Below are positions 31,069 to 63,481 of a stretch of DNA of 64,000 nt, one piece after another. The notes beneath the pieces were generated by a model. That model saw only the letters and a program-made list of their open reading frames with translations. It was not told the DNA's origin and ran no database searches. The stretch is from Asterias rubens (taxonomy: Eukaryota). The stretch spans positions 4,340,001-4,404,000 of the forward strand of contig NC_047062.1 of assembly GCF_902459465.1 (NCBI RefSeq), in the 5' to 3' direction. Position 1 is the first letter of the stretch; the number at the start of each line of letters is the position of its first letter. A program made the translations under genes and the position numbers.

Positions 31069-34000
31069 ATGTCTGTGTTTGTGAGAACATTTAGAGGTAA
31101 CACGCTGTGTCTTGATCCAGATGTTTGCTGTAACAGTGGAGAAAATCTGAAGAGAAAAATATGCGAATTAGAGGTATCAATGTAATTGTAAAAACGTATG
31201 ACGCATTAGTTAGACAGCATTGCGCAGAGCATGTAGATTGTACACATGAAGGTGCATTTCTTCGGTGTTTTTTGCGCAATTGATTTCAAGCCCAGTTTTG
31301 CGCAAAGTAACTTTTTTAATTGTAATGTTTAGTAATGTGGTTCTTTAAGTTTATATAGCCTACCTAAAGTTTATAAGTAATATTAAATATAAAAAGTGAA
31401 ACTGAAACTGAAAGAATTGTTTATAATGTGAATGTCATTTTAAGATAACTATTTTGAGTATAATTTAATAGTAATAATGAATAGTCAATGCGAACATGGC
31501 TTAATCTTAAGACTAGAACTTAGAAGGGAAAAGTTTCCGTATGGCGCCACCACTGGATAACTTTCCGTATGGCGCCACCACTTTTTCACTCATATTTACA
31601 GAAAGGGATATCTCATTGAGGTAAATTAAATACTATATTATTTCATATCGAATGAAAAAGTGGTGGCGCCATACGGAAACTTTTCCCCACCACTTTTTCA
31701 ATCGATATGAAATAATATAGTATCTAATTTACCTCAATAAGATATCCCTTTTTGTGTAAAAATGAGTGAAAAAGTGGTGGCGCCATACGGAAAGTTATCC
31801 CTTAGATTAGAAGGCCTAAGCCGTGTTTGCATTGAATATTCATTAACTTATCGCCACAAATTGTTTTAAACTTACTGGTATTATTAATGATTAAGCTGTA
31901 AAAGTCAAAGTGCGAACAGCCGGTAACATAGCGGGGTGGTAAGTTACCGCCACGGCGCTGTTAACTTTAAAACAGGCCAATTTGAGCCACGGTAACTAAA
32001 CAATGAATATTTACTTTACAGGGACAAGAAGTCCAATGCGAACACACCATTCTGGTAACTTAACAATACTGTCATGTGACTATATAAAAGGTCTGCTGAT
32101 GTTTGAACTACTGACTTTTATCGTGTGCCATCTGCGCTTCTCCGGAAATTCAGGTTAAAAGCTTACTGCGTATGCCGGGCTCATAAGTAACCAGACCCAA
32201 AAGTCCAATTTACGAACACGGCTTTAGTCTTACCTCTTCTCAAGTCGCTAGTCTTTTGTTACTCTTTATCAAAGGCATTGAACACGTTTGGTAATTGTCA
32301 AAGACCAGTGTTCTCACTTGGTGTATCCCAACATAAGCATTTAATAACAAGCCTGTGAAAATTGGGGCTCAAATGGTCATCAAAGATGTAAGAAAATGAT
32401 GAAAGAAAAAACACCTTTGTTGGACGAATTTGTGAGCTTTCAGATAGAAATAAAAGACTTCTGGCTAGAAGTCTTATAAATTTTAGTGAGAAATTACCTC
32501 TTTCTTTAGAGGGAGTCGTTTCCCACTAAGTTTTATACTATTAACAGCTGTGCAATGCTCGTTACCAAGTCAGTTCATATTTATTTTGAGTAATGACCAA
32601 AGTGTACCTTCCCTTTAACTTTGTTTTTTAAAAGTTATTCTAAACTTTTTGTAGGCCCCCAATTGTTTTTATTTTGGTAATGTTATTTATTGCAATTGCA
32701 AGGTTGTTTCCCTGTTGATCGGACCTTCTCTTGAAGACTTGGGTAAAAAACTTCTTGTTGAAGATTGCACTTACAATGAATTTAAAAAATATTTGTTTGG
32801 TTTTCCATTTTGTAGGGAATCCCTTCTCCGTTCTTGCATCTTTATCATCAAGGGCAAAGAGTTTGCAATGACGACATCATTGTACCAGGAGCAAACTATC
32901 AAGCACTGCTATGTCTCAATGGTGGCAAAGGAGGTAAGATCTATGACACTCAGTAATTCTGGTGAGGCTGCATATTCCTCATATTTAACCCAGGGCTTTA
33001 TCCTTGCACCAAACATTGTGGCCGGGAACTACCCCACGAGGCACAATAGACCATGGTAAATTATTAATCAACCTTTCGGCCCAATTTCATGCTCTGTTTT
33101 AAAAGCAAATAAAAATACTGCTTTGCTAAGAATGGGTGGTTTGTACCAGGTCATTCTTGTAAAGGTGAGGCAATGTTTTTAGAGGGCATCTTCTAAGAGG
33201 TAAATATTAATTTGTACCGAAATAAATCACAGGGCATCAGAGCAATGACCAGGGGCAGGGAGGCAATTGCCTCCACTGGCTCTGTGAAGTATCAGACCTG
33301 CTGTACTGTAGGCCTACCATTTATAAACCTGAAAGAAAAAACAAGTTTGGATCTTTGGACAGCCGCTGGACAGATGAACACCAATAGACCCCTTGCATTG
33401 GCTGCCATCGCTGAGGTCAAACAATGGAAATGTGGAAGTGCGTACGCGCCACGCACAACTCTGAACCAATGATAGGTCTTCATTTGATCTCGGTGAGGGC
33501 GCTGGTTGAGGGCTCTGTGGAATTATGTGTTAAGAGCTAAATAGTTTGATTTGATGTTTCAGGGTTTGGATCCATGTTGCGGATGATTGGAGCACAGATT
33601 GATAAGACGACCAACCACGACGCATGTCGAGATCTCAGTGGGCGGAGAATGAGGGACGTGAACAATGAAAAGAAGTGAGTTGTGTACAGGGTTTGCCCTT
33701 AAAGTTTTTAGTCTCTAGCCAGCAGTCCTGTTAGTTTGTCATTTCACTAGTCTGCCAGCTTTTTCAATAGTCCATATTTCAAATAAAATAGGGATGCTTT
33801 CAATATTGAACATTGAATGTCTGTGACCTTGGAGTCATTATCGCAAGCACCTCACCTTCAACGAACACATCAAAAATATCTATTCATTCTGAGAGTGGCA
33901 CAATGCCTTGAATTTTTTTTTTTGAGACGACTGTGATCTAAATCAAGATGTGTTATTTTAGCCTTTATTTGAATTCAACGACAATGTCTGGATGTTATTA

Positions 34001-36508
34001 TTGTAATCCAGCCATGCATCTGAATTGTTAAAAGGTTGAGCGACTGGATTGGCAAGAAAGCTGAGATGGAAGAGGAGAGAAAGCAGAAACGAGAAGAGAA
34101 GTTGGAGAGACTGAGACATCAACCCAGACACATCTTCGTTGACCCTAAGTATGATCAGCAGAAGAAAGAGGTGGTGGACAATCTGGATGATGCCATATCA
34201 CAAGGTAAGAGCAAAAGAGGTAATCGCTCCATAAAGCCTTTCACTTTTGACATTTAAGACTTTCCTCTTCCCAAGATCTGTAACAAAGAAATCCATGTTC
34301 CAAGCATTCACCAGAACAAGTATTGGCATTGGTGAGATGTCTGTAGGTGAATTGATGCCTTGATGTCAGATTGGGGGGTGGGGGGGTTCCAAGCTTCGGC
34401 CTTAATCAACAAGTTGTGGCCTTGGTTGATATTTTCCTTTACTGTTGTAATTTATCACTCAGGCATCCAAGCTTCCGCCTCTGTCGACACCGGTGCCTCA
34501 ACATCAGGAACAAGGGCTACCAAGAGGAAAGCACAAACCTCCACTAGAGGCAGCAAGAGGTCTACTACCCTATGGTTAGTGTGTGGGTTGATAGTAATGT
34601 GCCAACAGTAAACACTAACAATGATGATGCTGTGCATGGCACTGGGTTAATATGGGTTCGGTTTACATCCAAAAGTGTACCCATTGCTCTAAGATTGAAC
34701 ACAAACAAGAAATGTAATTATAATTATAAGACAACTATGATCAGTTAAAAAAAAGATTGCATTATAAAAGGCACCATATGCAAGAAACAATATTCTCATT
34801 ACACTTTTAAAAAGTTTGTACTAAACCATTTCTTCAGACACGACCTTAATTCAGGTTTGGGTAGTAGATTTAAGGCCTGGTCACACAGGCCCCGATAACG
34901 AGAACGAAAACGAGAACAATAAAAATGCACGCTCGCGATTGGTTGAATTGCTCCCAGCAGAATACGCCCACGCTCATTCAACCTATCGAGGGCGTGCATT
35001 TTTATCTTTCTCGTTTTCGTTCTTGTTATCGGGGCCTGTGTGACCAGGCCTTTAGTCTCTTAATCTAAGAAGAAAAACAAATTAGCCTGGTCTAGTTTTT
35101 TTCAGAAGACTGAAGATAGTGACTAAGTTATACTTTGTCAAATTTCACATTCATCTCTTCCAGCCTGGTGAGCATTTGCTGAACCTTTCGTTCAAACTGG
35201 ACTTTATACAACAATCCAATGCAGAATGGAGACATCAGAAAGAAATTTTCAGGCATCTCTTTATCTTGCCTCGGTGGACAAACTTCCCTAATCGCTTACT
35301 TTTGTGTGTGTATTGATTTGTTTTTCAGGATGGGAATAGAAGGAAGCGAGAGCGAAGAAAGCGATGACGAGGAGAGAGCAATGGAGGCTTCTTCAGACCC
35401 AAGCAACGTATCAACGAGCAGTCGTGATGAGAGAGACAGCCCATCAAGTACCTCGGACCAAGAGGCACTGCCCGACCCTCAGCCTAGTACTAGTAGGATT
35501 GATGTACAGGCATCAGAGGATTGCAAAGGAAGTAGTTCAACAGAAGCTAAGCATCCTTTATTGGCTGCTCTTCCCGTGCCAGGGGAAGATAGCAGTGGAA
35601 GTGGAGGTGACGGTAGTAACAAGTCAACAGATAATGTAAGTGCAGATTATTGCAGTATTGTCAATGCTTCTCATGCCCGGAAATTCATCCTAGAGAGAGG
35701 GCAAGGCCATTTTCATTTTGCAAAGGGCACTTGCACTGGAAAATCTTAAAGTCAATGGGAAACTTTTGAAGGGGCACCAATGCCAAGACCAGGGGCAACC
35801 TCCGTGTACTTCCAGGCCTGACTTCTATTTCAGCAATCAGACTGCCTGAAATTATTCTGGTTAGCCAATCCATGGGTAATGGACAAAGTCAATAATTTTG
35901 AGCATTATTTTGTTCAATATGGTTTTAGCTGTTCAAGTATGTCTCATTCACATTACAGGTATGGGATTGTTTCACAGTACATATAGAAATTTTCATGCTA
36001 CGAGCTCTAAGTTTTCGAGAAGCATTTTGTAGAAGGAAAGATTTTCTTTGTGATAGTGATACACAGAAAAGCCTCTCATCCTTAGTTGTTAATATGTTTT
36101 GTCTTGGTACTTATTCCGATTGATTTGTTTTTTTAGTTTTACATTTGACATCTTTTACAGCTCTTTATTTTATCTAACATACAGCTCTTTATTTTATCTA
36201 ACATGAACTTTGGGTGCATTGTTTTAATTCTCTGATCCTGGCTCATAAATTTTTATCTCAAAATTTATGATAATTCTTTGCAGGAGAATGGACCATTGGA
36301 CTTGGAGAACTTCTCGTCAGTAGCGGAGTTAGAATCAGTCGGGTTAGACAGCCTGAAGTCAGCTCTCATGGCTCTAGGAATGAAGTGTGGTGGTACCTTA
36401 CAGCAGAGGGCAGAGAGATTGTTCCTAGTGAAGGGCGTCAAACAGGAAATGATTGACCCAAGCCTGTTGGCAAAGCCAAGCAAAGGGAAGAAGTCAAAAG
36501 GAAAGTAG
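31069..36508 (+). CDS. SDE2: SDE2 splicing / replication-stress regulator (ubiquitin-like fold, SDE2 domain, C-terminal SAP-like domain), 382 aa
   Basis: Exons 31069-31173, 32816-32933, 33563-33674, 34035-34204, 34463-34574, 35329-35635, 36284-36508 (1149 nt). N-terminal ubiquitin-like [10 protein letters not shown]...EGIP, then the LCLNGG|KGGFGSMLR cleavage motif, [22 protein letters not shown], and C-terminal [28 protein letters not shown]. Confidence 0.97.
31524..31803. mobile_element. Palindromic MITE with repeated TTTCCGTATGGCGCCACCAC motifs
   Basis: The motif occurs twice in each orientation; outer ends AAGGG..A..TTTCCG / CGGAAAGTTATCCCTT. Confidence 0.8.
31819..32223. mobile_element. 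PIF/Harbinger-like MITE in SDE2 intron 1
   Basis: AGCCGTGTTTGCA ... TACGAACACGGCT|TTA. Confidence 0.6.
34873..35051. mobile_element. PIF/Harbinger-like hairpin MITE (TTA TSD)
   Basis: TTA|AGGCCTGGTCACACAGGCCCCGATAAC ... GTTATCGGGGCCTGTGTGACCAGGCCT|TTA. Confidence 0.85.
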
Positions 36509-37964
36509 AACATTACAACTTCTTCACCCTAATTCCTACTGAAGCTGGAAGGTAAAAGTATATCTATTTTCAAGGGAGAAAACCTTGATGCCTTGACTGC
36601 CAACATTGATTTTACTTCGAGCTAGCAATTACAGTTATAGCCCAGAAATTTATCAAACTTAACCACATCCCAATGTTAGCCTGGGCGACTCGTGTGACTA
36701 ATGTCTGAGTCGTGACTATTGACTGCTAAGTCGAGTCGTGACTACCATTTTAAGACTTCCCGACTACCAATTGTGCTGCTCTAGACTAATCACGACAACA
36801 TAGTTAACTTCTGAAATGCAATCAGACGTCAGTGACACAATCCCTCATTTTTCAGCTTGAATTTTGCTATATTGCGCCTTCGCCACACAATATGACGCAA
36901 TGCATCTTGGGAGTTAAAAGTTTGTCCTGACTAGTTGAGTAAAGCCAACTAGTCGCTGAGGCCTATTCCAGTGTAGTTTGAACTGTGCCAGCTGGCATTG
37001 CCAAGAGTACGAGTAATCTCAATAGCATTGGAAGTACTGGATTATTAGATGAAAACACCATCTTGAGCTCAGAAAGAATACATAGGAATACATGTTTTTT
37101 GTTCACGGCTAAAATGTGCAAGTACACGCCAACTGCTTTGTCAACAAAATGGGAGTGGAGCATTTATGTATGTGCACCTGTCAGTCAATTTATGAAAACC
37201 GCAAAACTTGTTGAAAATTGCATTCTCTAAATTCTCAATGGTTAACATTGTATTTTTTCCCCATCTGATAAAATGTTGTACTTGTCAAAGTATGTGTGTG
37301 ATTTTCGCGGAGATCATGGGCTAATGGTCCATTGTACCACTTTGGTTATAATTTTGCTGGAATTCTTTTTTTTCCAATTCTGTATTTTTTCTTTCCTTTT
37401 TAATGATAGTTTTAGAAATGGGGAGGGGGGAACATTTTAAAGTTCTTTATTTGTAAATTTTAAAACATAAACTTTTTATGTATTTAAATTTGTTTTAAAT
37501 TGTTACTCTACGAGTCTGCCGGAGTGAAGTTATTGCTAGATACCATTTTTTTCTAAATACTGTTTACTTCTCCCCATTGATGAGCCAGTTTTTGTGTCTA
37601 AACTTGATTGAGATTTCGTTAAACATGAAGTTCATATTTGTAATGATGGAAGTAACAACCTTCAATATGTTAGAAAGAGCAGAACTTGTTCTATTTAAGT
37701 TCAGAAGTTATGACATTTTAAACTTTTTAAACAGTCTTTGATTTGTTGTATCTTGATACCTGATGAGGTCATGATTGGTGTAAGTTATTTTTAGAGACTA
37801 AGACAAGAAATAAGCTTCAATATGACGTATCATTTTTCTCTTAAATCTGTTAATGCCAAGAAGTACAGTTGTCGCCAAGAAAAGTCATGTGTTATTATTT
37901 AAGTGAATAGAGTTTTGATGAAAACAATACCCGTTCTGACAGCTAATAATTGCTAAATGCTTTG

Positions 37965-38352
37965 AAAGGAACACGTTGCCTTGGAACGGTCGAGTTGGTC
38001 TTTGAAAAGAGTTTGTAAACGTTTGTTATGAAATGCATATGGTTAGAAAGATGGTTAAAAAGTAGAATACAATGATCCACACAAATTTGCCTCGAAATTG
38101 CGTGGTTTTCCTTTTACTTTTCAAACTAACCTGGTCGGCTATTTATGGGAGTCAAAAATTTGACTCCCATAAATGGCCGACCGTTTTAGTCGACGAGGTA
38201 AAAGGAAAATTACGCAATTTCGAGTGATACTTGTGTGGATCATTGTAATCTACTTTTTTACAATATTTCTAATTGTATGCATTTTATAACAAATGGTTAC
38301 AAAACCTTTTCAAAGACCAACTCGACCGATCCAAGGCAACGTGTTCCTTTAA
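37965..38352. mobile_element. Kolobok-like palindromic MITE family B, long copy
   Basis: The two halves are long inverted repeats centred near 38150-38160. Confidence 0.85.
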
Positions 38353-39658
38353 TATTCTTTGAAATTAAAGTTCACATCAGCAGTTTTAAAAATAATTTTA
38401 TGAGTATTATCATGGGATTGTTAATTTCTGAACTTTTATGATGCTTCCAAACTTTAATTAACATTTCAGTATCCCCGTCACCTGAAAGGAAGACCTTTTG
38501 AGCTCCTGAACAATTCCAATTTGTCCTTGGTTAATTGGTTTTCCTATTTGCAAACTTAAAATAGCAGTTGACAGTAAATTTATTTACAACAAAAGAAGTT
38601 CTACTATCTCTCAATGCCATACTTTGATTTCAACAAAATTCTTTGCTTAGTTTATTACTTATCATGGCAACATTTGTTCGTTACATTGTATATAAACCAC
38701 ACACACTTAGATCCTTGTCATTTGATTGGTGGAACACATGTTATGTGTCATCCTTTTTGCATTGTACAGTTACAGCGACACTCCAAAATTTAATATCAGA
38801 GTCCGATTCCAAAATAATCATTCAGGCCCGATACTTCATGGAGGGAAAAAAGGCATTTGCCAACATGCCCCCTGTTCATTGCCTTAGTGCCCTTGAAGTA
38901 ATCATGTAGACATTTACCAAGTAGAAAATGCCTTGGTGCCTTTGTACTTTCAAAAACGAAGCATACAAGCCTGATCATTCCTAGCCGATTCGTCCAAACA
39001 AGGCAAGGTTGTGTCATGACAGACAAGGTCAGTGACCACATGGAGTTCTTCACATTGTTCAGAAGGATTTTCAGAGTGTGGGGTGGATAAGTTTTCATGT
39101 CTTTTTTGTGTTTATTGTGAAAAAAAATCAAATGACAAGGATCTATGAATGTATTTTGTGTTTGCATTGTCACAGAATAATAACACTCGGTGAAATCTGG
39201 GTTTTCAATTTCAAAATGAAAAAATCCCTTGTGAATTTTTTCGGCCACAATGCACTCATATACATCTAAGATTAGTATAATATTTAAATATCATATTAAA
39301 TACTGATAAATAAACATCAAAAGTCTTTTTTTTGCATACAGTTATTTAGTTATTTTGTTCAATTCTTACTTTAGAAATCAAAAGTATACATTCCATTTTA
39401 TAGTTCATACCAAAAATCACGACCGTTTCAGACAAGACTTTTATCGTTTTGTCAAATTACAATAAACTACATTTTGCCTCAGTATACAGCTATTTTATTG
39501 CATTTGTTAACTCTATCTTCGGCAATCACAAAATTGCAAAAAAATGGTGTTTGGTTTTCAAGCACAGGGCCAACGCCACAAAAAACCTTGTTGCTTGGAA
39601 CCAAATCAAGTTTTTTTAGAGAAGATAAACACATTTCAGAAAGTAAGATTTGATCTTT

Positions 39659-40042
39659 TTAAAGCCATTGGACACGTCTTTTGGTACAGAAAAAAAATAA
39701 ATAAAAAAAAATATCACAGATTTACAAATAAGTTACAGGGTTTACAGAAGGTAATGGTGAAAGACTTCTCTTGAAATATTGTTCCATGAAATGCTTTACT
39801 TTTTGAGAAAACATTAGAACAATATCAATTCTCAATATCGAGAATTACGTATTTGTTTTAAACACATGTCATGACACGTGAAACGTGCGGAAACAAGGGT
39901 GGGTTTTCCCGTTATTTTCTCCCGACTCCGATAATCGATTGAGCCTAAATTTTCACAGGTTTGTGGTTTTGTATAGAAGTTGTGATACAGGAAGTGTGGG
40001 CCTTGGACAATACGGTTTACCGAAAGTGTCCAATGGCTTTAA
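39659..40042 (+). mobile_element. Kolobok-like MITE family C, second copy
   Basis: Same termini and internal sequence as 20986-21348. Confidence 0.85.
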
Positions 40043-40462
40043 ACTGATTTATATCAACTGGATACCACAGGCACCAATACTGAAAATTCATTCTTTTTTT
40101 CAGTTACCGAATCAAAACATAGTACCAGTCATTGAAAAACTATAACAGTGATATTTACACAACTCTTGCAAAAATCTTGAATAGAATTAATAAAAAACTT
40201 TTTATATTAAGCTTTGAACATTTGTAATCAATAAATACGTTCCATGTACAATAACATACAATGTTTGATTTAATTCATTTTGATGCAACTTTACAAGCTG
40301 CCATAAATGCAAACTTTGAAATAAATAACCATCCAACTTGGACAAATCTGTAAACAAAACAATTTCATTCTCTTTAAAAAACCTGAGCAGGGAAGGACAC
40401 TGTTCTACAACCCATGATGTTTAAATTTGGCATTCTGTGATCACAGCTGGATCGAAATGTAA

Positions 40463-40808
40463 AGCCGGCCTCAGGTCGACCTTGTGCAACAAGAAACAGT
40501 CAGTGACTCACTTTTCAGGATCACAATGCACCTGAGCTAAGACCCTTTGGAACTTTTCAGTCGGCGTATATTTACGACCCGAGCGTAACTGCGATGATAT
40601 ATAGACAATCTGAAACAGCCGCCGCTCGAAACAAATGAACAGTGGCAAGAGTAGAACAGTTTTAACATGTAGGACGTGATCCCGACGAACGGTAACCAAT
40701 CTTAGGCGCAAGATTTCTCAGTTGTTGTGGCCTGGGCATACGTTGTCTGCGCGTTGCCGACAGTTTGTTGCGGGCGCAAGAAAATCGCAGGTCGACCTGA
40801 GGCCGGCT
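40463..40808. mobile_element. PIF/Harbinger-like MITE (TAA TSD)
   Basis: TAA|AGCCGGCCTCAGGTCGACC ... GGTCGACCTGAGGCCGGCT|TAA. Confidence 0.8.
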
Positions 40809-41399
40809 TAAACCAGACAGTAGTGTTAGACAGTAGTGACTGGAAAGACATCAGTCATCACACACTCTGCATATATCACATTATGAAAACACTGCATCTG
40901 GGATTGTCTCCATAATATCTGTGGGGGAAAGAAGGAGAACAAAAACCATTACTCTTCACAATGAACCAATAACAGCAATTTTTTTTCAAACTCAGAGCAA
41001 AATGTGATAACTATTATTTACAGATAGCCTAATATGTATATTTTCCATTCTTAGTTACTTTAAAAGGCACTGGACACTATTGGTAAAACAATTGTTAGCA
41101 TAAAATCTAACATGAATGAGCAATAGAGAGCTGTTGATAGTATAAAACATTATGAGAAACAAATCCCTTTGAAGTAACATAGTTTTTGATAAAGAGGTAA
41201 TTCCTCACACAAATAATAAAAGATTCAGGCCTGAAGCCTTTGCACACAAAAGTGTGATATTTTATGCATTTGTTGGGATACACCAAGTGAGAATACTGGT
41301 CCTTGACAATTACCAAACGTGTCCAGTGTTGTTAACACTTGTGTCAAATTTGTGAATCTTTCTCTATTTTGCGCTTTTGAAGTTTGGAGTTTGTGAAAT

Positions 41400-50300: not shown

Positions 50301-53300
50301 GCAGCAGTACTGCAGCTATCAGTATAATATGCAGTAGATCCACTGAGCTGGGAGGAACTTTGCTCTTTGCCTCCTCTACAATGTGGACTTGAGAAAACTC
50401 CTCTGCCTCGTACAAAGAATGGTACGTGCAGCTTGCCTCCTCTTGGCTGTAGAAACTAAACAGAAAAAAAACCTCAATGCATAAAGTAAATTACCATACA
50501 GTAATATCAAAGAAAACAAATGTATGATATAGATGGAGAATTGCAGCTGGGATAAAGAATGTTAATTTTGGTTTTACCCATATACACCGATGTGTGCTAG
50601 CACTGTATACTCAGTATTTTTTACTGTCCAGTTGTAAGACACTGCTCTAGAATTGCAAAGCTTGTGGGTTCGAATCCCACCCGAGTATATATCCCTGTGA
50701 TATATTTTTTCACAGAGCTTGGGAAAGTACCGAGTATACAAATGAGGAAAGTCCAAACAAATCAACTTTGAAAGGATTAGTGTTTTTGGAACCTGATTGT
50801 GCTGACGGTTTTTCTTCACTCCGCCTCTTCTTTCTTGACAATCCTCCATCTCAACATCCTTTGGGTCTTGAGCAGCAGTCTTCCTGTATAGATGAATAAA
50901 TGTAAAGATGAACTAAGATGCTGTTTCCTAAAGGCACTGGACACCTTTGATAATCGTCAAAGACCAGTGTTCTCAACTGGTGTATCCCAGCATATGCACA
51001 AAATAACAAATCTGAGAAAATATTGACTCAATTGATCACTGCAAGAGAATAATGAAAAAAAAGTATCCTTGTTGCACAAATTTGTGTGCTTACAGATGCA
51101 TAACAAAAGGCTTCAGGCCTGAAGTATTTTATTGTTTGAGTGCAAAATTACCTCAGTTTCCCCAAAACTATAATTACCTCAGAGGGAGTCGTTTCTCACA
51201 ATGTTTTATACTATCAACAACTCTCTGTTGCTTGTTACCAAGTAAGTTGTTTATGCTCAAAATCATTTTGAGTAATTACCAAATAGCGTCCAGTGCCTTT
51301 CATGCAATATTAAAGCAAAGCAGTGAAAAAACAACAATAACCATGAGCGCATTACTTTCTATTATGCATGCCTCAGTCTAGTGTAGGTTAGGAGCTTGAC
51401 ATCAGTATCTACCATACAAGCTAGTCTACATACTTTTTGGAATCAGCCGCTTTCTGTTTGCCTCTGGTATCAGTCACACATTCAGAATCATCACCTGAAG
51501 AGGATTCCAGATCCGACTCTTGTATTGAGTCTAGCTGGGCACGTTGTTTGCTCTTGGTGTCTGTAATAAATAATTATGGTGGTTATAATCAAACCATAGC
51601 AATATTAGAAAACAATATTTTTTTTTTTTTTTTTAAATGAGATATTTGGCGTACTCACAAGGCCACTTCAAGGTGAGGGTTACTCTTAACTGATTTGGGC
51701 TATCGACCCAGATCAATTGTCACCAGGGACACATTGCCACCCACTCCTGGGGCTGAAACAGGGTTACCCCCTTCACAGTCCATAATGATGTAGTCATGAG
51801 TATCATCCACTAGGAGCCTGGCTGGTAGAGCAGAATGCTCTACCTTCCCAACTTTATATGAAGCAATGGTTACGTGCCTTGCTAATTAAAGGGCACAAGT
51901 TCCATGATCATGATTCGAACCAACACTCTGCTGCTTGCTACAATAATTTACAATCAAACCCACAAAGGCTATTTTGGATGCAGTTGAAATGTTGACGCCC
52001 ATCAAGGAAAGTTATTCCCATCCTACAGACTTTATGTTGAAGAAAGAGCCAATTATTTTGTACCACTTACTCAGCCACATGAAGGGAGCTCCTGTCCGCT
52101 TAGGTACAACCTTATTAGAATGCCTTTCATTGATGAAGTTACTGATGTTCTGCAACGGGGTAGAAGACTTCTTCTTGGTGTCAATCTTCCTGTAGTTTGT
52201 CAAACATAAATGAAAATACCAAGTGTTAAAACTCATGAAATGTAAAAGTTGTTTTAATCTTTCTTGAATCCAGCCATTACATACTCAATTTTTTTTTTAA
52301 GTTAAATTAAGTTTTTATATAAATATGACAGCATATTTAGTTAACAAGCACTATACATGGCATGCAAGAGTGCACACCACAAACCAACATGACATGCCGG
52401 ATATTTTGGAGATAAAAAAATGCAAGTAAAAACATATTTCAGGTCTGTAATAGCGCTAAGTCCCTAGCAAGTATTGCCCAGATCTTAGCCTAGACAGGCA
52501 TGGTTTTGATTTAACAAAGAGTTAACTGCTAAGCAAAGTGTGATGGCAGAATACAAAGCACTATGGTAGTACAGACAATTCATCCAACGGTGAATGTTAG
52601 CACTTTGTGAAATTGAGATCAGACACTTTATGGAGAAGCTCCAGTAGAAATTTAAATTTCCCTCAAAGGATTCAATTTTCAAAGTAAAAACTGCCTGGCC
52701 CTTAAAAGAACCAAGTCTCCGGCCTGTCTAATGTACCTTTAGTAGGTGGTTGTTCCCTGGCATTTAAGCTGTTGAAAGTAACTTAAGAGTCTTCAAAAGA
52801 ATAAACTTGCATGCCTGATCCTTACCCATGGGAACTAGTTGGAGTCAATTTATTTTATTTATTTATTTCCAGGCAAGCAGGACATACACAGAATAGGCAA
52901 TACAAACATGACTACACAGAGAACAAGCCTGCGGATAACCAAAAAGCGAAAATAATCACTATCTAAAGGCGATCCAGACAATAAAAATAACAAAGGCACA
53001 AAAGGGTACAAAGACAAAAACGTCATAACAATTTTGAAAATAGCACATCAGATAGCAACAAAGGTGATTGCCTCCATGCCCCTGGTCATTGCCCTTGCAA
53101 TGCTCCAGTAAAAATTTACAATTTCCTCATAGGGTGCCCTTTACCAAGGACAATATGCCTTGGTGCCCTTGCCCTTTTAAAAATGAAGCAAACAGACCTG
53201 AGTTATCCTCTCCAGTATATTGTTGGCACTCACAGACTTAGTTAGTTCATTCTTTAATTCAATTCCAGAAAATGTTATGAGTGAAACCCCAAACCTACTT

Positions 53301-54516
53301 AGATTTCTTGGCTCCAGGAGTAAGAGTAACAAACGATTTCTCATCTTCTTCCTCGGTCGCACATTTATCCGCTTCGCTTGAAGGGATTATCTCAATGTCC
53401 AAATGATCTGAACAGGAAGAATCTGAAGACGGTGAGTTAGCAGGAGCCACGGTTGGTGCAATACTTGGCGGTAAAACACAACGGAATGGTGAAGCTTAAA
53501 GAGAAATAAAAATAAGACAATTGTATCACAACAGTGAACAACTGCATTCTAAATGAACCCGATTGGAGAACAAACAAAACACCAACAAACCCTGAAATGT
53601 TAACCTTTGAAAAGAGGAGTATCTCATGGTTAAACTTCATAGACAGGGGGGTTTAGACAGATTTTGAAATAAATGGAACCTTCATTGTTTACTTATAATA
53701 ATGTGACATTTTAACATTGGATATAACTCAGTGTTCAAATTCATTTGAGGTTCATGGATAAGATGTGAGATGTCAAAAAACAATTTCAATCTGTTAAAGA
53801 GAGTGGACACTACTGGTAATTACTCAAAGTAATTATTAGCATAAAACCTTACTTGGTAAAGAGTAATGGGGAGAGGTTGATAGTATAAAGCAATGGAGAA
53901 ACGGCGCCCTCTGAAGTGACATAGTTTTCGAGAAAGAAGTAATTTTCCACAAATTTGATTTCGAGACCTCATGTTTAGAATTTGAGGTATCGAAATCAAG
54001 CATCTGAAAGCACACAACTTCGTGTGACAAGGATGTTTTTTCTTTCATTGTTATCTCGCAACTTCGATGACCAATTGAGCTCAAATTTTGTTATTTTATG
54101 CATATGTTGAGTTACACCAAGTGAGAAGTTGTGTCTTTGACAATTACCAAAAGTGTCCAGTGTCTTTAAAGAATGCTGCAAATTATTAGTTTACCGGTAC
54201 ATTAAGATAATATTAAGTTCTCCAAGAACATTGTTTTAGTTTTAATTTCAATAAATAATACATTTTAGTATTCAAAAGGTTATCACATTCTCATCAAAGT
54301 TGTGTGCTTCTCTTCTTCAAGGAAAACAAAAAAAAACAAAATACAAATTTTAGTATACAAGTTGATGTATTTAGCTGTACTTGACTGAATACCTGGTAAT
54401 GAATTTCCAGTGTTTTTGGATGGTGGGAAATGTGGTCTGAAGGTCTGGAGCGGTCGGACTTTGGAGTACGTCTTCACAAAGACACTCCTCTTTTTAGTGA
54501 ATGGTGAATCTGTCAT
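41400..54516 (-). CDS. Orphan ~927-aa Ser/Thr/Lys-rich, largely disordered protein with multiple S-T-P motifs
   Basis: 17 coding exons: 54393-54516, 53299-53494, 52071-52189, 51434-51560, 50793-50883 (weak donor, uncertain), 50284-50446, 49798-49920, 49291-49398, 48565-48702, 47457-47570, 46178-46369, 45514-45656, 44646-44798, 44104-44244, 43025-43405, 42521-42772, 41400-41618. They chain in phase without stops. The ATG exon has an upstream acceptor at 54555 and a likely non-coding first exon ending at a donor near 55612. No family recognised with confidence. Confidence 0.75.
41689..41847. mobile_element. PIF/Harbinger-like MITE
   Basis: TTA|AGGCCGGTTTATAGT ... ACTATAAACCAGCCT|TTA. Confidence 0.75.
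43040..43290 (-). repeat. Coding 30/21-bp minisatellite encoding (ATPAVGHSTQ)-like units
   Basis: CCCACTGCCGGTGTGGCTTGTGTGCTGTGT-like units within exon 43025-43405. Confidence 0.92.
47128..47418 (-). mobile_element. tRNA-derived repeat family D (~250-270-bp unit), copy with terminal direct repeat
   Basis: Contains A-box-like TAGTTGGTAAG and B-box-like sequence. The segment TGGTTTTACC.ATACACCGATGTGTGTTAG occurs at 47151-47180 and again at 47389-47418. Confidence 0.85.
47711..47968 (+). mobile_element. tRNA-derived repeat family D
   Basis: GTAGTCTAGTTGGTAAGACACTGCTCTAGAATTGCAAGGGTCGTGGGTTCGAATCCCACCCGAG. Other copies at about 10165-10290, 16536-16718, 18195-18410, 48910-49150 and 50540-50740. 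Confidence 0.85.
53794..54169 (+). mobile_element. Kolobok-like MITE family A, full-length copy
   Basis: TTAA at both ends; same internal sequence as the 12839 copy, including the hairpin GATTTCGAGACCTC...GAGGT.TCGAAATC. Confidence 0.85.
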
Positions 54517-55612
54517 GGTTTATTAGATTTGTCCATTAACTGCATTGTAGGAGATCTGTAGAAAAGAAGTAAAAAATAAACTGGATAGCATTAAAATAAT
54601 GTTATTTTAAACTAGATAATAATTATTAGGGTTTACCATACATTGGGTTTTGTCAATGTTTGTAAGCCTATACAGCTGATTTACAGCCAAATCTTCAATA
54701 TTGATAATTATTATTGTAAATACAAAAGAATGATTCGTAAAGCTTTTTTACGTCTTGGAATTAGGTATATTATTACAGTGTCTACTTTTTGAGAATTAAC
54801 AGAAACAAAAACTGTCCCAGACTTTTCTTTCTCAGCAGAAATCAGACCACCATACAGGTAGATTTCTACCTCCATGCTCAGACGGTCACGCAATTATGTT
54901 GTTAATGTTTAATAGTAAACTAACCTTAATGTGATTTAACGATTGCAAATCAAGTTATCCTCAAGTTACCCTGCAAAACTATTGAATATAAATATAATTA
55001 TAATAAGGGCCTTTCATGCCCCTTGCCATGTTTGCTCATTGCTGTCACTGTCAGTGTCAGTCATGGCTGTTGTTGATCCCAACCAAATCACGATTTCAGA
55101 CGTTTCTTCTGGCTTTTTTTCATCTGTTAACGAGATTAAAATTGTTCAAACATACACACAAAGTCAAATCGTACATACCCACTGAACTTGCACTTTTAGA
55201 TGATTTTTCAATCCTTCCAAGTATTCCACAAAAAATGTACTAAAGAACCAATTATTTTCTGCACCATTTTAAGTAAAAAATCTCCAGGGTCGTCCGGTCG
55301 GTCAAAATTAAAATGCAGACTATTTGTACATGACACCACGCTGAGCTATGTAAAATTAGGTCGACCAGAAACGATTACACATAATACTTGCTTCCGAACT
55401 ATTGCAGTACAGGAACAAGACTTGTTAATCGGAGGGGTGGCAAAGTTTTTGAAATGCATGTAGTAAACAAAACAAATACACAGACAGAATTCGAAGGGTG
55501 CAAGACAAACATTTATGCAAGTGCAAACATAAACTGCTTATTTTAAATTAAATATACGATATATTTTACAAAAGTAACGGTTCAGAAACTTTGGGGGCTC
55601 CCTATCGTATTA

Positions 55613-55710
55613 CCTTCTGCAAAATGCAGTGGTCCAAATTCCTTTTTGCAAACACGTACACAAAATAGCCGCGAAAATCGATGTTGTCGTCTGCTCACGT
55701 GAAACTTTTT
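55613..55710 (-). promoter_or_regulatory. Putative promoter / first non-coding exon of the STP-rich gene, with an E2F-like site and an E-box
   Basis: Donor-like AG|GTAATA on the minus strand near 55612; TTTTCGCGGC (revcomp of 55668-55677); CACGTG near 55696. Confidence 0.45.
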
Positions 55711-56228
55711 GACTTTGTTTTGTGCTTGACATTACAACATAACGAGAATATTGGCAAGGAAGTACTCGTATCAACTCCTGTAGTTCTATAAAAGGTATTT
55801 ATGAACAGTTTTTGTAAAGAACAATAAATAAGTAGGGAGTGAAAACACGACTGCAACTTATTCACTTTTTTATTTATGTGTGACTGTGTGACTGACTGGT
55901 GGTGTGTGTGGGGAGAGTTAGCTGACGTTGTGATTTATTTACACTGACACTCTAGCACACTCGACTCGCCATATTCAGAACCACGGCTAGCTAGAATGCA
56001 TGTAATGTGACAGTGTGACAGTTTGTAATACATTTTATTTCATTACCATCTTGTCGGATGGTTCTGGGGGGGGGGGGGGGGGTAATAATAAAGTGCTACA
56101 CTGAGTAGCTCGGCTTTACCATGATGGGTGGATGGGCTGAATACGTTTTCGATTACATAAATTTTAAAAAGTGAGAAACTATTTCAAGAAGCCCCACCTC
56201 GCTGCTCATGCAGGGTTGTGAGATGAAT

Positions 56229-56773
56229 GCTGGTCATCTCGCCACCTGACAAGGGATCGCCCCCAACAAAGTCGCCCCCTGCAAAGTCACCCCCTACCCG
56301 GTTCGCCCTGGGTGAAAACAAAGTCGCCCCCCTGGCATAAGTGCCCCCAGCAAATGTCGCCCCCAAGCAAAGTCGCCCCCAGATGTTGTTCGGAAAATAA
56401 TTAAGGCTGCAGTACAATACTTATGGTAAAAACAATATAGTTAAAACATTAACCCTAACCGTAACCCTAACCGTAACCCTAACTAACCGTAACCCTAACC
56501 CTAACCCTAACCCTAAACCTAACCAATACAATAATTAAGCCATTATATTAGCGAAAGAATCCTTAATTATTTTCTGCGGGCAAATTTGCTAGGGGGCGAC
56601 ATTAGCTGGGGGGGCTACATTGTCAGGGGGCACCTTTGCTAGGGGCGACATTGTTTGGGGGCAACATTGTAAGGGGGCGACTTTGTAACAACTCGGGGCG
56701 AGCCGATTAGGGGGCGACTTTGCAGGTGGCGACTTTGTTGGTGGCGAGCTTGCTAGGTGGCGAGATGACCAGC
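56229..56773. mobile_element. MITE-like element with 18-bp TIRs, subterminal AAAGTCGCCCC arrays and a central telomere-type repeat
   Basis: GCTGGTCATCTCGCCACC ... GGTGGCGAGATGACCAGC; (CCCTAA/CCGTAA)n at 56450-56524. Confidence 0.85.
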
Positions 56774-57202
56774 CCCCGGTAAGATACGTCAGTCTCTGTA
56801 CAACGGATAGTACATCAGTAGTGATACCACTACCAGCCAGGGCTAAAACAATGATTAATGAAGTATTAATGAGTGCCCTAACCTAGTATTAGGCCTAAGT
56901 AAGACGATTAAGACCCACAGGTGAATGTTGTTACAGATAGTTTTAGTTTTTACAACAAATGAGATTGACTAATTATTGAAATTGTGGTTTGGTGCCTAAA
57001 TAATTATTTAAATTGTGGTTTGGTGCCTAAACGTGTATATATAAAATAAAATAAAAGAGACCTACATTAAACGTAACTGTTAATTTTTGCCTACTGTGGC
57101 TGTGGTTCATGGATTGGTGTTTAAAAAATTATAATGTTAAATGTACTTGTGCCCCCAAATCTTGTTCACAGATGAGTCAGGTCACAAAACGCCTGCGTGA
57201 CC

Positions 57203-58930
57203 ATGGCAACAAGACCCACAACTTTGTTTGACAGCTCACCATTTCACCATGTTCCATGCTCACCTTTCGTTGGGACAACACTATCATCTGGTTCTCCAGC
57301 CCAACGAGCTGTGCCAGATATTGGAGAGATGAACCCATCATTTGTGGTAGACAGTCCACAGTCCGTTGCTGGTAACCTTTGCTCTAATATAAAAATAATC
57401 TTTCTTTTGTGATACTTGAAGTCATCAAAAACTACACAAGTACAATTAAGTTTGGGTGGGGTTCTTGGTTCCCAGCCTGTTGGTTCTCGGTTCTTTTTCC
57501 TCCAAAATACTCCAGGGAAGAGTTATGACTGGAGGGGTACCTGGGGTTGGACTAAGGAAGAATTGACTCTGAGAACAGCAGCTATAAATGTTGTTGGACA
57601 GGATTGAGTAATAGAGTTGATATAAACTTGTGAGTAGGAAGTTTGAGGTTGTGGAACGAGAGCAGTGGCAGAACTAGATATATTCCTATTTGATACATTT
57701 CGAAACATTCATTTGTTTGTGGATATGACGTTCTCATTTTGGGGGGAATGTGAAAGGGGGGTCAAGGTATCAGAGCCTGCTGGAGTGTTATCAATCAAGG
57801 ATGGTAAGGGAGAAGGGAGTTAAAGTGGGTAGGTCAACATGTATGCAAAATCACATTTGTTCACTCTTCCCTTATGTTTCATATTGGCCTAGCTTTTCCA
57901 ATATTTTTGTTTTAGTTTTAATATCCGATTAAAATACTCTTCACGATGGGTTCAGGAGACAAGAAATAGCACACAGGGTGACAAAACTGCAATAGGAAAA
58001 ATTAATGTCAATCGGCTTTTTTAATACAAACTCAGTTTGTATCAAAACAAACCTTGTTTCGTACTAAAACCAGAGAATTGTGTATTTACTTTGGTAGGTC
58101 AAGATGTTCCTCAAACTCCAACATCTGCTCATATTCGACGACCTTCACATATGTCTCTTCGGACTCAATGCACGCCATGCAGTGCATCACACCGACCACC
58201 AGCAACACCCGGTAAAATACTACGTTTTTCCACGGGGAAGAAAAAAACTAGCTGTTGTAAAACTTAATTTGGCAAAATGTGCCTACATAAAAAAAACCAT
58301 TGTTACAGCTTTACTTATTATTTGTGACACATTTTTTTCAAAGTGTGTAGGGTAGGGTCTTCATAGCAAAGGGTCACAAAAGTCAATATATTTAGGAGGG
58401 GTCGAGGATCAGTGATATTGGGATGTAGTGATTTTAGTTTTGAAAAGAATTTAACAGTCCCCCACAACACACTTTAAAAACAGATTTTAAAGTATAAATC
58501 GAAAAAAGAAAGAAACAAAATGTGTGAAAACTAGTAGAGTGTAGATGTAACTTGTGCCATACGGATTTCTTGGCACTTGCACCCCCTCCCATCCCTGAGA
58601 CAATGTTCCTTGTGCACTTTAGTTTTGACACATCTTACTGTTTCATTCATCTTTTGCGAATATGAAACTGTTTCCCCAGTAAGATATAAGGCTGTTCTTC
58701 TTCCAAAAGTTACCCTAATACATAAAAGTATAAATCCAAGTTCTTGATTTTGTTTTAATGTTTCAGAGCAAGAGGTGCCACAGACACCGATCAAGAGAGA
58801 TGTTTCAGCAAAAAAAACATCACACCTCAAAGTAAAGTTGCAGCAGGAAAACAACAGAACAAAACTAGTTTCAAGAAAAGGGGAGTCAATGGAAATTAAT
58901 CTTTTCCACGGTGATGACATTTTCGGATAG
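57203..58930 (+). CDS. Small (~148 aa) SP/TP-rich orphan protein, 3 coding exons
   Basis: ATG in gaccATGg at 57203. Exons 57203-57371, 58098-58211 and 58767-58930 have pyrimidine-rich acceptors, GT donors and phase 1-1 continuity. Protein: MATRPTTLFDSSPF...SPQSVA-GQDVPQTPTS...PATP-EQEVPQTPIKR...NLFHGDDIFG-stop. Confidence 0.65.
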
Positions 58931-59599
58931 GATTTCCGTATTGTTCATGAGTGAGTGCAAATGCAGACAAAATAGTTTTATTTCGAGTTTTCTTTTTGCT
59001 CTCAGAAAAATCTGCAAAATTGTTATTGTAATAAACCGTAGACGTATAGACGTATGTAAAAGTTGCAGCCAATATAGGTCAGCTTTTGTATGTACTCAAT
59101 AAAATGTTCCTACTTTTCTCCAAAGGGCCAAATATCAATCCTACTAATGATTTGAATTTACTCATGTGTAGTAAAAGCATGAATAGAACTGTGATTAGCG
59201 GTTCATATTAAAGAAGTTAACTTAAGAAAAGTTGGAAATGATTGCAATAGGAAGTATTATATTGCATAGTTTTAATCAGTGAGATCCCGCAAGTTAGAGT
59301 GAGTAGAGAACTCTAGTGAGTAGTTTTTGATTTGAGTCCTACAAAAAAAATATTGAGAAAAAAATACTGATGCCCTCCTTTATTTTGTTAGCATCATGGA
59401 CATATAAAAGCAGTGGAAGCAACTCGTATAAACTGTCTATCACCGCCGTGCGTCTATTGTTTACTTTTTTATAAAAAATAAAAAAGTGGTAAGTTTACCG
59501 AAGGTCATCAGTACTTACCTCGCATCTTCTTCTAAAGAGTTCATTTGCACTTGTCCCTTACACAGCTGTTAACATCTTGAGGTTGCTCTTGACCAATCC

Positions 59600-60230
59600 C
59601 TATTAATGAACAGTCACATCATTGTCTGCAAAAGTGGTTATTTTCAAATTCACAATTTGGGGAAATGTTGTTCATCACTCAAAATGCATGCTGTCAGAAC
59701 GCTGTCAGATCATAGGTACTTTCAGGCATTTACTAAATCTGCCAAATCATTTATGTACGGTGCTAGGGAAGTGGATCTCCCAGGTCTATCTATAGCTAAA
59801 TTTTTGCGTTCACTTCACCACTGGCTCCCCATCAAGAAAACAATCGTGTTTAACAAATTTCTATTTGTATATAGATCCTTCCAATGGCAATTTCCTAGTT
59901 TGTTACTTTTCTGCCAATCTTACATTGTATATACAGATGGGCTGGGAGGTCACAGGTTGCTCCTCTTCCGATTTCAACCGGCTAGTTGTTTCAAGCTCCA
60001 AAGGGAAGGGCTGAGGACAGCTCATTCTTTGCTGTTGTCCCTTTTAGGAAACAACCAGCCGTGTGATATCAGGGAAACCCGCTACTACTGCGACATACAA
60101 GCGCAAATTCAACTCACCCATTTCCTAGCCTGTGATTAGGTTTGTTGTTATGTATTTTCTTCATCTCTTTGTGTAATTCTGATGGTGATTACAAGTCGCT
60201 GTATTCTTGTAGGGCGCCATAATTATACAT
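59600..60230 (+). mobile_element. Highly degenerate L2 LINE 3' fragment
   Basis: Remnants IVCKSGYFQIHNLGK and LHHWLPIKKTIVFNK, parallel to the L2 peptides at 29148-29597. Confidence 0.7.
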
Positions 60231-61428
60231 GCTCTGTTGTGTAATATTATTGTTAAATAGCCAATAATTGTCAGTACATTGGCGTTAATTTATACTAAAC
60301 ATTGTATGATGGCAAATCTGCACCATCAATCAAAGATGATGAACACACCCAAAAACCAACAAACAGCCTTATTGTAATTTTGGACGTTCTATAACAAGTT
60401 GTGAAAAGTTCAGTTATCCACTCGAGTAAGGAGAATCACTCAAGTTTATAGCCACTATTGTTGGCCCCCAGGATTTCTTAAGACACTTTCAGGCGAGTGC
60501 AACTTGTTCAGACTTGTTGATTTGGTTGTATCACGACAAGCCCCATCTGAAACGGGTACACAAAGATGTTTGTGACGCCCTTAATGGCTCAGTTCACACA
60601 TTCACCAAGTGACAGTCTGCAATGATATCGCTTGTGCGCATGAGTGCGTCCACTCACGTCAACCATTTTACTCTCCATATTGCTAATTAATGTGTATACA
60701 TGTAATGTATTTGGTAAGAATGTTTTAAACTTCAGAAATAACTGAATTGTTGTATTTATGGTGTTGGAAAATGAAACAGCGAAACATAAACGTGATCTAG
60801 ACCCATTTCCTGCTGTATCTTTACTGTTGTAGTATCTTCAAGACAAAGTGTAATAAGGTTCTATCTGAATAATGTCAATCCTCCAGAGAAATAGCCTTGA
60901 AAATGCCCGACATAAACATGCATGTACTATCTCTGACAAAACTTAGGGAATAAACCATACTTCTTCTTTTACCCGATAATGATTCTCAAATAATTTTTAA
61001 AAGATCTGGTCATACACATTTTTCAAGCATGGAGATTTGTCTACAGGGGAACGACCGTGGCATGTGAAACGCAACTTTAATCGTATACTTTATTATCATT
61101 TAATGAACATGAAGTTTGACATTAATGTTGCTTTTGTATGAAAGAATAACCAAAGTTCAAAGGAATTACTTAGCTAAATTTTAAATGCAACCAACAATGA
61201 CCATCACCGCTCAACAGTTTTCGCGAAAACATATAATGGTGTTCGGCCTTGAGATTTATGAAGATACATACCTAACTGTTCATTGACTCATGGCGGATTT
61301 GATTGTTTGTTTTGGTCAAGAGAAAGGATCCATCTTTGTGGGTCCTATCTCTGTATGGTTTTATATAGACGTATGAAATAGGCACATGGACATGCCTCAG
61401 AATTAATAATAAACGCAACCCCTTGTAC

Positions 61429-61714
61429 TGACGTCAGCAGATCAATTTCAAGATGGCTTATTTTGTATTAGTACGTCTAGTCGACCATGTTTACAAACAC
61501 ACACCACACAAGATGTACACTATTCTTTTACCAATTATGCCCGTCCGAAGGAGGCATTCTTCTATAATTAGCACCACGCGAGTAAAACTGACCCAAGAAC
61601 AGTCAAGCCCTGTTATACTGCAAAGTCTGCCTCCCCGAAAAAGTCTGCCCCTCTCAACGTCCTCCAAATGCCAAGTCCATCGGATCCTGCTTTGTGTTTG
61701 CACACAGACCAGAC
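61429..61714 (+). promoter_or_regulatory. Lefty proximal cis-regulatory cluster: CRE/bZIP palindrome plus four Smad-binding elements
   Basis: TGACGTCA at 61429-61436; GTCTG at 61625 and 61643; CAGAC at 61705 and 61710. All lie within about 550 bp of the ATG. Confidence 0.5.
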
Positions 61715-61974
61715 GGCATAATTGAGCCCACCGTCAGCCTGTGTAATCACGTAGCGGGGTTATCAATGGATTACGCCGATTGTGTTAACCTGATCATTCA
61801 TGCTACTGGATGAACCGTCTGGACTTGTTCAGCTCATCGGCAATCATAAAAAGCTGGGATAACCAGTTTACAACATCAGTGTCATCTCACTACCTCTAGC
61901 TGTTACATTGTACCTCTATTGCTCTACCTCGTCATACCGTATTTTCACAAGTCTTGGAATTTCCTGGAGATATC

Positions 61975-63481
61975 ATGGAAGCTCGGCTCTTCTCTTTCTG
62001 GATTATTATCGTCGTTTCCGAGGTGCTGCTCTGCCTTGGTGCCCCCTTTCAGCCAGACCCGTTCCGGGGGATGGACTCTGAAGTAGACCCATTTGAGATG
62101 GACTTGATGGAGAGACTCGGTGTTAAAGACCCTTCAGCCACACCCAGCATCGACAGAAAAGACATAGTCATCCCGGATCATATTTACGCCAAATATTCAT
62201 CGCTTCTGAAACATCACCGTATGAAAAGGAAAACTATCACACAAGGAGTACGTGAGAACCCTGGTAAGTAAAATAATATTTAAATTATTTTATTCTTTTT
62301 GTACTATGATTTAATCTTTTAATCAACGGCCCCTTTTTATTTCATGATTATATGAACAAGTCAAGAGTTGAAATGCGCCTGAAACAATAAATAAAATTCT
62401 GTCTTATTTTGATACCAAGGGCAAACCATCAAAGTTCTTCAATTCACTTTATGCAAGCTTGCAACTTTTCGGCTGATCAGCCGATTTACACTTTATTCAT
62501 TCATTGTACAGTGCCATAGAAAACTGAAACCCATTTTTGCAAAAGTTTTGTGTGAGAGGCAGTCTCCCCTTTCTCCTAAAACAAAGTTACATGTACATTT
62601 CCGCAAAAACTGGACTTGTCAATAATATAAACAAAATATGTGTTTACAAAAATCAACAACTTAAGTTTAATCTGTTCATCTAATCAAGGTATCCGCGGTC
62701 GAGTTGTCTCCGCTTCTCAGTCTCGTCATGTCTACACCTTCGACATGTCATCCCTGCCGGCAGGTAGCGAGGTAATGATGGCTGAACTCCGGATCTACAA
62801 GGAACTACCGAATCATTCCATCCATAAGCCGAATGCAACCCATCGCCACGGAGTAACCGGAGGCCTCACCTCTCTCCATCAGGTGACTACCAACAACTCG
62901 CAAGGAGGTGGCGACAGTCCAAGTACACTATGCAAAGTTGATGAAAGGTTAGTATTTCAGAGAAACATTTTCAAAGAAAATCTTTTCAATAGGAATTCAA
63001 CCTGTTGATTTTGTGCACATTTTCGACTTCGGACATTGTCTTTTGAAATAGATCAGTTTTCTTCCGAGTTGAAATGGGCTTTTTTTCAAATAAATCTGTC
63101 TTTATTTATACATCACCGTAATTCGTCACCAATTGCTGCTATGATGGATGCCAAAAACAGATAGTTTGATTGCATATAAACTATACATTCATAATAGTGT
63201 ATTGAATTGTTCTCTAATGGTATTAAATTGTTCTGTCTCAACAGAGTAATCAACTTGGACTCGTTCGGTTGGAAGAATTTTGACGCCACAGCCCCCGTGA
63301 CGCAATGGTTGGAGACACCATCGACCAACTTGGGTCTGGAACTGCACGTGGACCCAGTGAGATCCGGGTCTTACGCCAGGAGGGTTGCCGAGCGTGTGCA
63401 CTTCAGTCCGGAGGAAGAACCAGATCACGAGGAGAGAGGTGTGCCGATGCTTATCGTCTACACAATCAAATACGCTCCAAT
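61975..63481 (+). CDS. lefty: Lefty/antivin (TGF-beta family Nodal antagonist), exons 1-3; the final exon with the cystine knot lies beyond the window
   Basis: Exons 61975-62263, 62689-62947, 63245-63481. Signal peptide MEARLFSFWIIIVVSEVLLCLGA; IVIPDHIYAKYSSLL followed by furin site RMKR; HVYTFDMS.LP.GSEVMMAELRIYKE; VDER|VINLDSFGWKNFDATAPVTQW. Motifs and intron positions fit the Lefty prodomain as I recall it from vertebrates. Confidence 0.92.

Follow-up and report, generated by a model that had tools for sequence, protein, structure and literature searches.

In the sea star Asterias rubens, the genes SDE2 and lefty lie head to tail on the plus strand, with two genes between them and 25,466 bp from the SDE2 stop codon to the lefty ATG. 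We found this arrangement in a 64,000-nucleotide stretch of the genome (contig NC_047062.1, equal to LR699092.1 positions 4,340,001-4,404,000; hereafter the window). By their sequences both are true orthologues of their vertebrate namesakes, and the linkage is best read as a piece of an ancestral neighborhood that has survived passively; we put the probability of this reading at about 0.7. An initial annotation, made from the sequence alone, had already put SDE2 on the strand of lefty, about 25 kb ahead of it and with two orphan genes between, and this layout holds: the intervening genes encode 723 (minus strand) and 148 (plus strand) amino acids, and neither has a Pfam match. The locus is of interest as Lefty is a Nodal feedback inhibitor in axis and left-right patterning whose origin and regulation are debated.

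The SDE2-lefty pair and its distribution

SDE2 occupies positions 31069-36508 (+). Pfam matches on exon open reading frames and GT-AG introns gave a seven-exon coding sequence (31069-31181, 32860-32933, 33563-33674, 34035-34204, 34463-34574, 35329-35635 and 36284-36508) for 370 amino acids, a predicted model that draws on sequence and splice sites only, in which every intron is GT-AG and the reading frame stays open throughout. The exon open reading frames match the Pfam families SDE2 (PF22782, 3e-6) and SDE2_2C (PF13297, 1.1e-28). The predicted protein begins with a ubiquitin-like part ending in GGKGG, which is followed in the spliced model by FGSMLR, and continues with the SDE2 domain, an acidic, Ser-rich middle and a C-terminal, SAP-like SDE2_2C domain. 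All three hallmarks of the family (the GGKGG end, the SDE2 domain and the SDE2_2C domain) are present. On this predicted protein the gene is a true orthologue of vertebrate SDE2, and the name given to it in the initial annotation is borne out by the Pfam matches and the GGKGG motif.

Exons 1-3 of lefty, at about 61975-62265, 62691-62948 and 63246-63479 (+), match XP_033642777.1 exactly, a 375-amino acid protein named 'left-right determination factor 1-like [Asterias rubens]' that was found by a search with the exon 3 open reading frame. They encode amino acids 1-261, comprising the signal peptide and the propeptide, and carry a Pfam TGFb_propeptide match; the first identification of lefty had only these propeptide exons to go by, and the exact match upholds it. 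Exon 4, which encodes the cystine-knot mature domain, is expected at 64204-64542, about 200 bases past the end of the 64,000-base window, and the full-length protein has both TGFb_propeptide (PF00688, 3.7e-16) and TGF_beta (PF00019, 7e-14) domains. The exon 1/2 splice (62262>62688) is confirmed by RNA contigs, which, like all those used here for splice checks, derive from a close relative of A. rubens and not from A. rubens itself. The next matches in the exon 3 search were Paracentrotus Antivin/lefty and the Leftys of amphioxus, lamprey and Glandiceps. All the named TGF-beta relatives checked from that search were of the Lefty type, except for one short nemertean protein labelled 'BMP2-like', whose end resembles other Lefty-like propeptides.

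Membership in another TGF-beta subfamily, the outcome that the initial annotation had named as damaging to its proposal, is not what the comparisons show. Full-length searches returned only Lefty-named proteins; bird Lefty scored about 200 bits, whereas the best of the solved TGF-beta ligands (GDF8, TGF-beta2/3 and inhibin) did not exceed 49 bits. A single cysteine (C336) is found in 12 of the 12 Leftys aligned, that of A. rubens included, where canonical ligands have CC with the interchain cysteine; the Gdf1/3-like gene adjacent to amphioxus Lefty keeps the canonical CC. A maximum-likelihood tree of 17 Leftys, confined to the Lefty subfamily, tracks the species tree and separates hemichordates plus echinoderms from amphioxus plus vertebrates (support 98/97). 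By these sequence comparisons the gene at 61975 is a true Lefty orthologue. Nodal antagonism and Nodal-dependent expression have been reported for the sea urchin and amphioxus orthologues.

The linkage is already documented in vertebrates. Human SDE2 immediately adjoins LEFTY2 in the array Lefty1-Pycr2-Lefty2-Sde2 (Kuraku 2024, PMC12344233), in agreement with the order SDE2, LEFTY2, PYCR2, LEFTY1 from which the initial annotation had argued. A Tmem63a-Lefty-Sde2 linkage runs across vertebrates, including marsupials and a caecilian, with the SDE2-Lefty order kept from cartilaginous fishes to mammals and with the shark LeftyB nested in an Sde2 intron; SDE2 is broadly expressed, and Lefty is developmental (PMC12344233). 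As in the starfish, SDE2 is the next conserved gene beside Lefty. The starfish locus differs in having two lineage-restricted genes between the pair, GSTZ1 and not TMEM63A on the other flank, a single lefty and no PYCR2. Human SDE2 and the LEFTY genes presumably share one orientation, which we take from NCBI Gene to be the complement strand for all of them.

A lefty-containing block has also been reported at greater depth. Simakov 2015 lists a loose micro-syntenic 'lefty' block among its deuterostome-specific blocks (Extended Data Fig. 6c), and, like the starfish linkage, the block is claimed for ambulacrarians as well as chordates, with as many as five genes intervening (PMC4729200). Simakov's criterion asks for linkage in at least three species. 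The text of that paper names no members of the block, includes no asteroid and takes lefty as deuterostome-specific, whereas the GSTZ1 link described below reaches a brachiopod. Kuraku 2024 does not treat invertebrate synteny (PMC12344233), and the searchable literature contained no mention of SDE2 (or C1orf55) linked to Lefty in an invertebrate. Neither SDE2 nor LEFTY appeared in the synteny-paper supplements searched, a set that does not include those of Simakov 2015. The same pair is linked in an ambulacrarian (A. rubens) and in chordates (the vertebrates, PMC12344233), as a shared ancestral linkage demands.

Several observations weigh against such an ancestry. Among invertebrates the link has been seen in one species, A. 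rubens. We compared 10 kb on either side of lefty, or of a Lefty-like gene, in ten other genomes: those of Patiria, Diadema, Holothuria, Amphiura, Glandiceps, Branchiostoma lanceolatum, Grus and Scleropages, together with the Lefty-like genes of Lineus and Lingula. Within these limits SDE2 was neither called nor found by tblastn in any of the first eight, and it was not found, by tblastn or otherwise, near the Lefty-like genes of the last two. Upstream of amphioxus Lefty, the first 10 kb hold a head-to-head Gdf1/3-like gene and an SLC35-type transporter and no SDE2; at best, SDE2 is several genes away there, with at least two others between it and Lefty, if the two are linked at all. Amphioxus is the one informative case. 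The negatives within 10 kb are otherwise weak, because the distance in A. rubens is itself 25 kb and because the crane (Grus) is negative despite the vertebrate-wide linkage; the chicken Lefty locus is the subject of a figure in Kuraku 2024 (PMC12344233). The proposal in the initial annotation that the linkage could date to the deuterostome ancestor is plausible: a pair matching in order and orientation is improbable by chance, and Simakov 2015 lists its deuterostome 'lefty' block. In the other invertebrates compared, no SDE2 came to light within 10 kb of lefty.

Genes and conserved DNA around lefty

Gene calls near lefty were taken from the NCBI annotation of the LR699092.1 locus, to which window positions 51975-64000 are identical (100% over 12,026 bases). 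The first of the two intervening genes, called by NCBI at 723 amino acids, is on the minus strand; its 5' exon ends at 54516, and the call continues beyond the end of the retrieved extract. Its exons are collinear with those of Patiria at 49764-54516 (tblastx), where the Patiria miniata call, also on the minus strand, is 1060 amino acids long. The second is a small unnamed gene of 148 amino acids at 57203-58930 (+), with coding exons at 57203-57370, 58097-58210 and 58766-58930, for which there is both an NCBI call and RNA. An RNA contig is spliced 57370>58097 and 58210>58766 at GT..AG sites, at a depth of 347, and yields exactly 148 amino acids; the transcript starts near 57170-57198. Coverage by RNA contigs continues past the gene with falling depth from 60643 to about 61574, in separate contigs that do not prove a single transcript. 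Pfam and ESM-Atlas searches with the exons of both genes gave no matches. Both intervening genes are real and conserved.

The small gene also occurs beyond the starfish. In two starfish, the urchin Diadema and the enteropneust Glandiceps it precedes lefty by 3-4 kb, in the same orientation (positions 6208-7695, 5393-7093 and 4564-6679 of the retrieved Patiria, Diadema and Glandiceps extracts, respectively). The orthologues are 155 amino acids long in Patiria and 132 in Diadema, with the same termini, and unannotated in Glandiceps; the shared motifs are VPCSPF, EQEVPQTPI (a nine-residue exact match in Glandiceps) and a C-terminal LFHGDDIF. In Glandiceps the N- and C-terminal motifs are similar and in the right order and strand. 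The score of the Glandiceps chain was greater than those of all 200 shuffles, but not greater than those of all real-sequence controls, so the case there rests on the nine-residue match and the matching termini. No copy of the gene was detected in front of the Holothuria, Amphiura and amphioxus lefty genes.

On its other side lefty adjoins GSTZ1, which lies directly downstream on the opposite strand (tail to tail), just past the end of the window in A. rubens. Its best solved match is maleylacetoacetate isomerase (PDB, 3e-19). The tail-to-tail pair is common to A. rubens, Patiria and B. lanceolatum, and in Lingula GSTZ1 lies beside the Lefty-like gene, so that the adjacency spans three phyla. 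In the retrieved extracts GSTZ1 is at 17856-22571 in Asterias, 17030-22379 in Patiria, 14298-21891 in B. lanceolatum and 15403-20449 in Lingula, and its exons correspond one by one, at 55-70%, across these genomes. We found no paper in the searchable literature that links lefty with GSTZ1 by synteny. The last amphioxus GSTZ1 exon matches twice (extract positions 14310-14426 and 16068-16175), pointing to a tandem duplication, or to one additional copy of the exon, on the downstream side of Lefty; the product called in this region also has a weak MADF match.

In Lingula, Lineus and Tubulanus, the Lefty-like proteins are 200-230 amino acids long and stop right after the propeptide, where exon 3 of the deuterostome genes ends. 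Their genes lie at 10001-11172 of the Lingula extract and 10001-11823 of the Lineus extract, and a TGF-beta cystine-knot exon was not detected within 10 kb downstream in either. The occurrence of the lefty-GSTZ1 adjacency in an echinoderm, a cephalochordate and a brachiopod is positional evidence that these lophotrochozoan 'Lefty-like' genes are true orthologues.

To locate conserved non-coding DNA, the 10 kb upstream of lefty were compared with Patiria (blastn and MAFFT); the SDE2 introns and the region from 36.5 to 52 kb lie outside this comparison. What is conserved there, apart from exons, amounts to a promoter of about 0.5 kb and one 34-bp element. The proximal promoter and 5' untranslated region (61437-61974, +) are about 70% identical to Patiria and include several perfect blocks, among them one with a forkhead-like TGTTTAC (61487-61505), one with a tandem Smad-box-like AGACCAGACGG containing two Smad-box cores (61706-61716) and a TATA-like CATAAAAAG near 61850. 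The start site lies near 61876, where an RNA contig begins. As predicted sites, these blocks would fit local Nodal/Smad feedback. The FoxH1 core (AATMMACA) shows no enrichment in front of lefty in echinoderms; FoxH1 is not known outside the chordates. The 34-bp element, at 55670-55703, is 94% identical in Patiria (blastn); within it are an E2F-like CGCGAAAA and a CACGTG E-box. The element sits between the two divergent intervening genes and is probably a promoter element of both. As far as this comparison reaches, the conserved, putatively cis-regulatory DNA of lefty is proximal.

Explanations for the linkage

Independent juxtaposition of SDE2 and lefty in starfish and in vertebrates, by chance or convergence, would fit a pair seen in one invertebrate genome and ten other lefty loci without SDE2 within 10 kb. 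On the upstream side of SDE2 the window carries POLA2 and a Cadherin-like/zf-Nse gene, which point the same way: neither is known as a neighbor at human 1q42, and with POLA2 presumably absent from there, the shared synteny would not continue beyond SDE2 in that direction. On the other hand, SDE2 would fall within three genes of lefty by chance in about 0.5% of cases, assuming about 1000 genes per chromosome, and a match in order and strand lowers this further, so that even on a shared chromosome the figure is well under 1%. The locus also keeps other very old adjacencies, those with GSTZ1 and the small gene, and a deuterostome lefty block, with members unnamed in the text, was reported by Simakov 2015 (PMC4729200). 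We consider independent origin quite improbable, and common ancestry of the pair likely, perhaps very likely. A common origin leaves the question of what has held the genes together, for which the initial annotation had proposed Lefty enhancers lying in or near SDE2, with breaks selected against and SDE2 as a housekeeping bystander. Genomic regulatory blocks with bystander genes, reportedly described by Kikuta in 2007, do resemble the SDE2-lefty pair in that a developmental gene is long linked to an unrelated housekeeping gene, and the order of the pair is kept in starfish and vertebrates, presumably in the same orientation. The shark Lefty copy inside an Sde2 intron (PMC12344233) is in keeping with such a block, and Irimia 2012, as cited in the text of PMC4729200, credits much ancient microsynteny to them. 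However, SDE2 and lefty are separated by two conserved genes that have a promoter element of their own, and the conserved non-coding elements in or beyond the bystander that define these blocks were not found in the 10 kb compared with Patiria (SDE2 itself being outside the comparison), where detectable non-coding conservation around lefty is confined to 0.5 kb from its start. In amphioxus, Gdf1/3-like and Lefty share a 4-kb intergenic enhancer region, and the 4-kb upstream fragment is sufficient to drive Lefty-like reporter expression; the Gdf1/3-like gene was inserted there (PMC10794066). Kuraku 2024 notes no coordinated expression of the two genes and reports that a working marsupial Lefty retrocopy lies over 300 Mb away from Sde2 and that the Lefty paralogues of teleosts are on separate chromosomes (PMC12344233). 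A regulatory block should never be broken while its target keeps its expression, and the amphioxus, marsupial and teleost cases run counter to this. Mouse lefty enhancers are likewise said to be proximal (Saijoh 1999/2000), which also counts against a block. The intervening genes, the proximal conservation, the amphioxus fragment and the vertebrate data give the proposed enhancers in SDE2 no support; we regard a regulatory block as very improbable, and SDE2 appears to place no regulatory constraint on the linkage.

A different unit may be the constrained one, namely the trio of small gene, lefty and GSTZ1, with a lefty control region that overlaps the small-gene transcription unit and with SDE2 merely nearby. 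In asteroids, an echinoid and an enteropneust the small gene keeps its strand and its place, 3-4 kb ahead of lefty; RNA contigs from it come as close as about 300 bp to the lefty start, and GSTZ1 is retained downstream in three phyla. In amphioxus the control region lies immediately upstream of Lefty and is usable by the neighbor, and the lefty-GSTZ1 flank is present, as in the starfish; the amphioxus neighbor, however, is a cephalochordate-specific insertion placed head to head, whereas that of the starfish is an unrelated small gene in tandem (PMC10794066). Against a constrained trio stand the failure to detect the small gene upstream of lefty in Holothuria, Amphiura and amphioxus, a long small-gene 3' untranslated region that is not conserved in sequence with Patiria, the unexceptional Glandiceps score against real-sequence controls, and the fact that short intergenic distances by themselves reduce the chance of a breakpoint. 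We think this explanation unlikely. The conserved small gene next to the lefty promoter in ambulacrarians marks a place to search for the lefty control region. The broadest version would have the whole neighborhood (SDE2, small gene, lefty and GSTZ1) as old as Bilateria and under cis-regulatory constraint, with the prodomain-only Lefty-like genes as positional orthologues and a Lefty lineage that either began as a prodomain-only secreted protein or was reduced to one in Lophotrochozoa; taken as a whole, this is distinctly unlikely.

We favor passive survival of an ancestral arrangement. The head-to-tail linkage of SDE2 and lefty would be a remnant of a neighborhood also kept by vertebrates, in which the SDE2 link would be one loose link and other links are seen in other lineages. 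Few breakpoints in a short interval, and not enhancers in SDE2, would have preserved it. As a single starfish example of a kind of conserved microsynteny that is already in print, the linkage is modest on its own; the lefty-GSTZ1 pair and the small ambulacrarian gene are the fresher leads.

Minor features of the locus

Downstream of SDE2, only repeats and short open reading frames were seen in 36509-41400. Interspersed repeats occur in the remainder of the interval, together with two tRNA-like elements in inverted orientation and a coding tandem repeat with a 30-bp unit. The tandem repeat has at least seven copies at 43007-43313, and its minus strand encodes a repeated ATPAVGH-type peptide in a possible exon of the 723-amino acid gene. 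The tRNA-like Rfam matches, at 47212-47285 (-) and 47806-47878 (+), make up the two arms of an inverted repeat (93%). Neither is called by ARAGORN, and they are probably the heads of tRNA-derived short interspersed elements in an intron of that gene. In one RNA run the small gene is strongly represented (depth 347, as above).

The longest SDE2 stretch free of stops is 188 amino acids, compared with 370 for the protein. A search for the SDE2_2C exon elsewhere returned exon-sized open reading frames on short contigs only. The longest of these contigs, host-derived scaffolds from ENA metagenomes, carry a compact SDE2 gene whose exon 3 is 86% identical to that of the starfish. No TGF-beta open reading frame was found in the 5 kb downstream of SDE2 on these scaffolds, and a single-exon Forkhead open reading frame (346 amino acids) lies a few kb upstream of the gene on the opposite strand.

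Upstream of SDE2 in the window, POLA2 exons lie at 2408-5850 (+), with Pfam matches to DPOA2_OB (1e-31) and DNA_pol_E_B (1.5e-5), and the Cadherin-like/zf-Nse gene, which is large, is also located there. Just upstream of SDE2, at 28847-30450 (-), open reading frame fragments matching RVT_1 (1.2e-20) belong to a retroelement of the non-long-terminal-repeat class.

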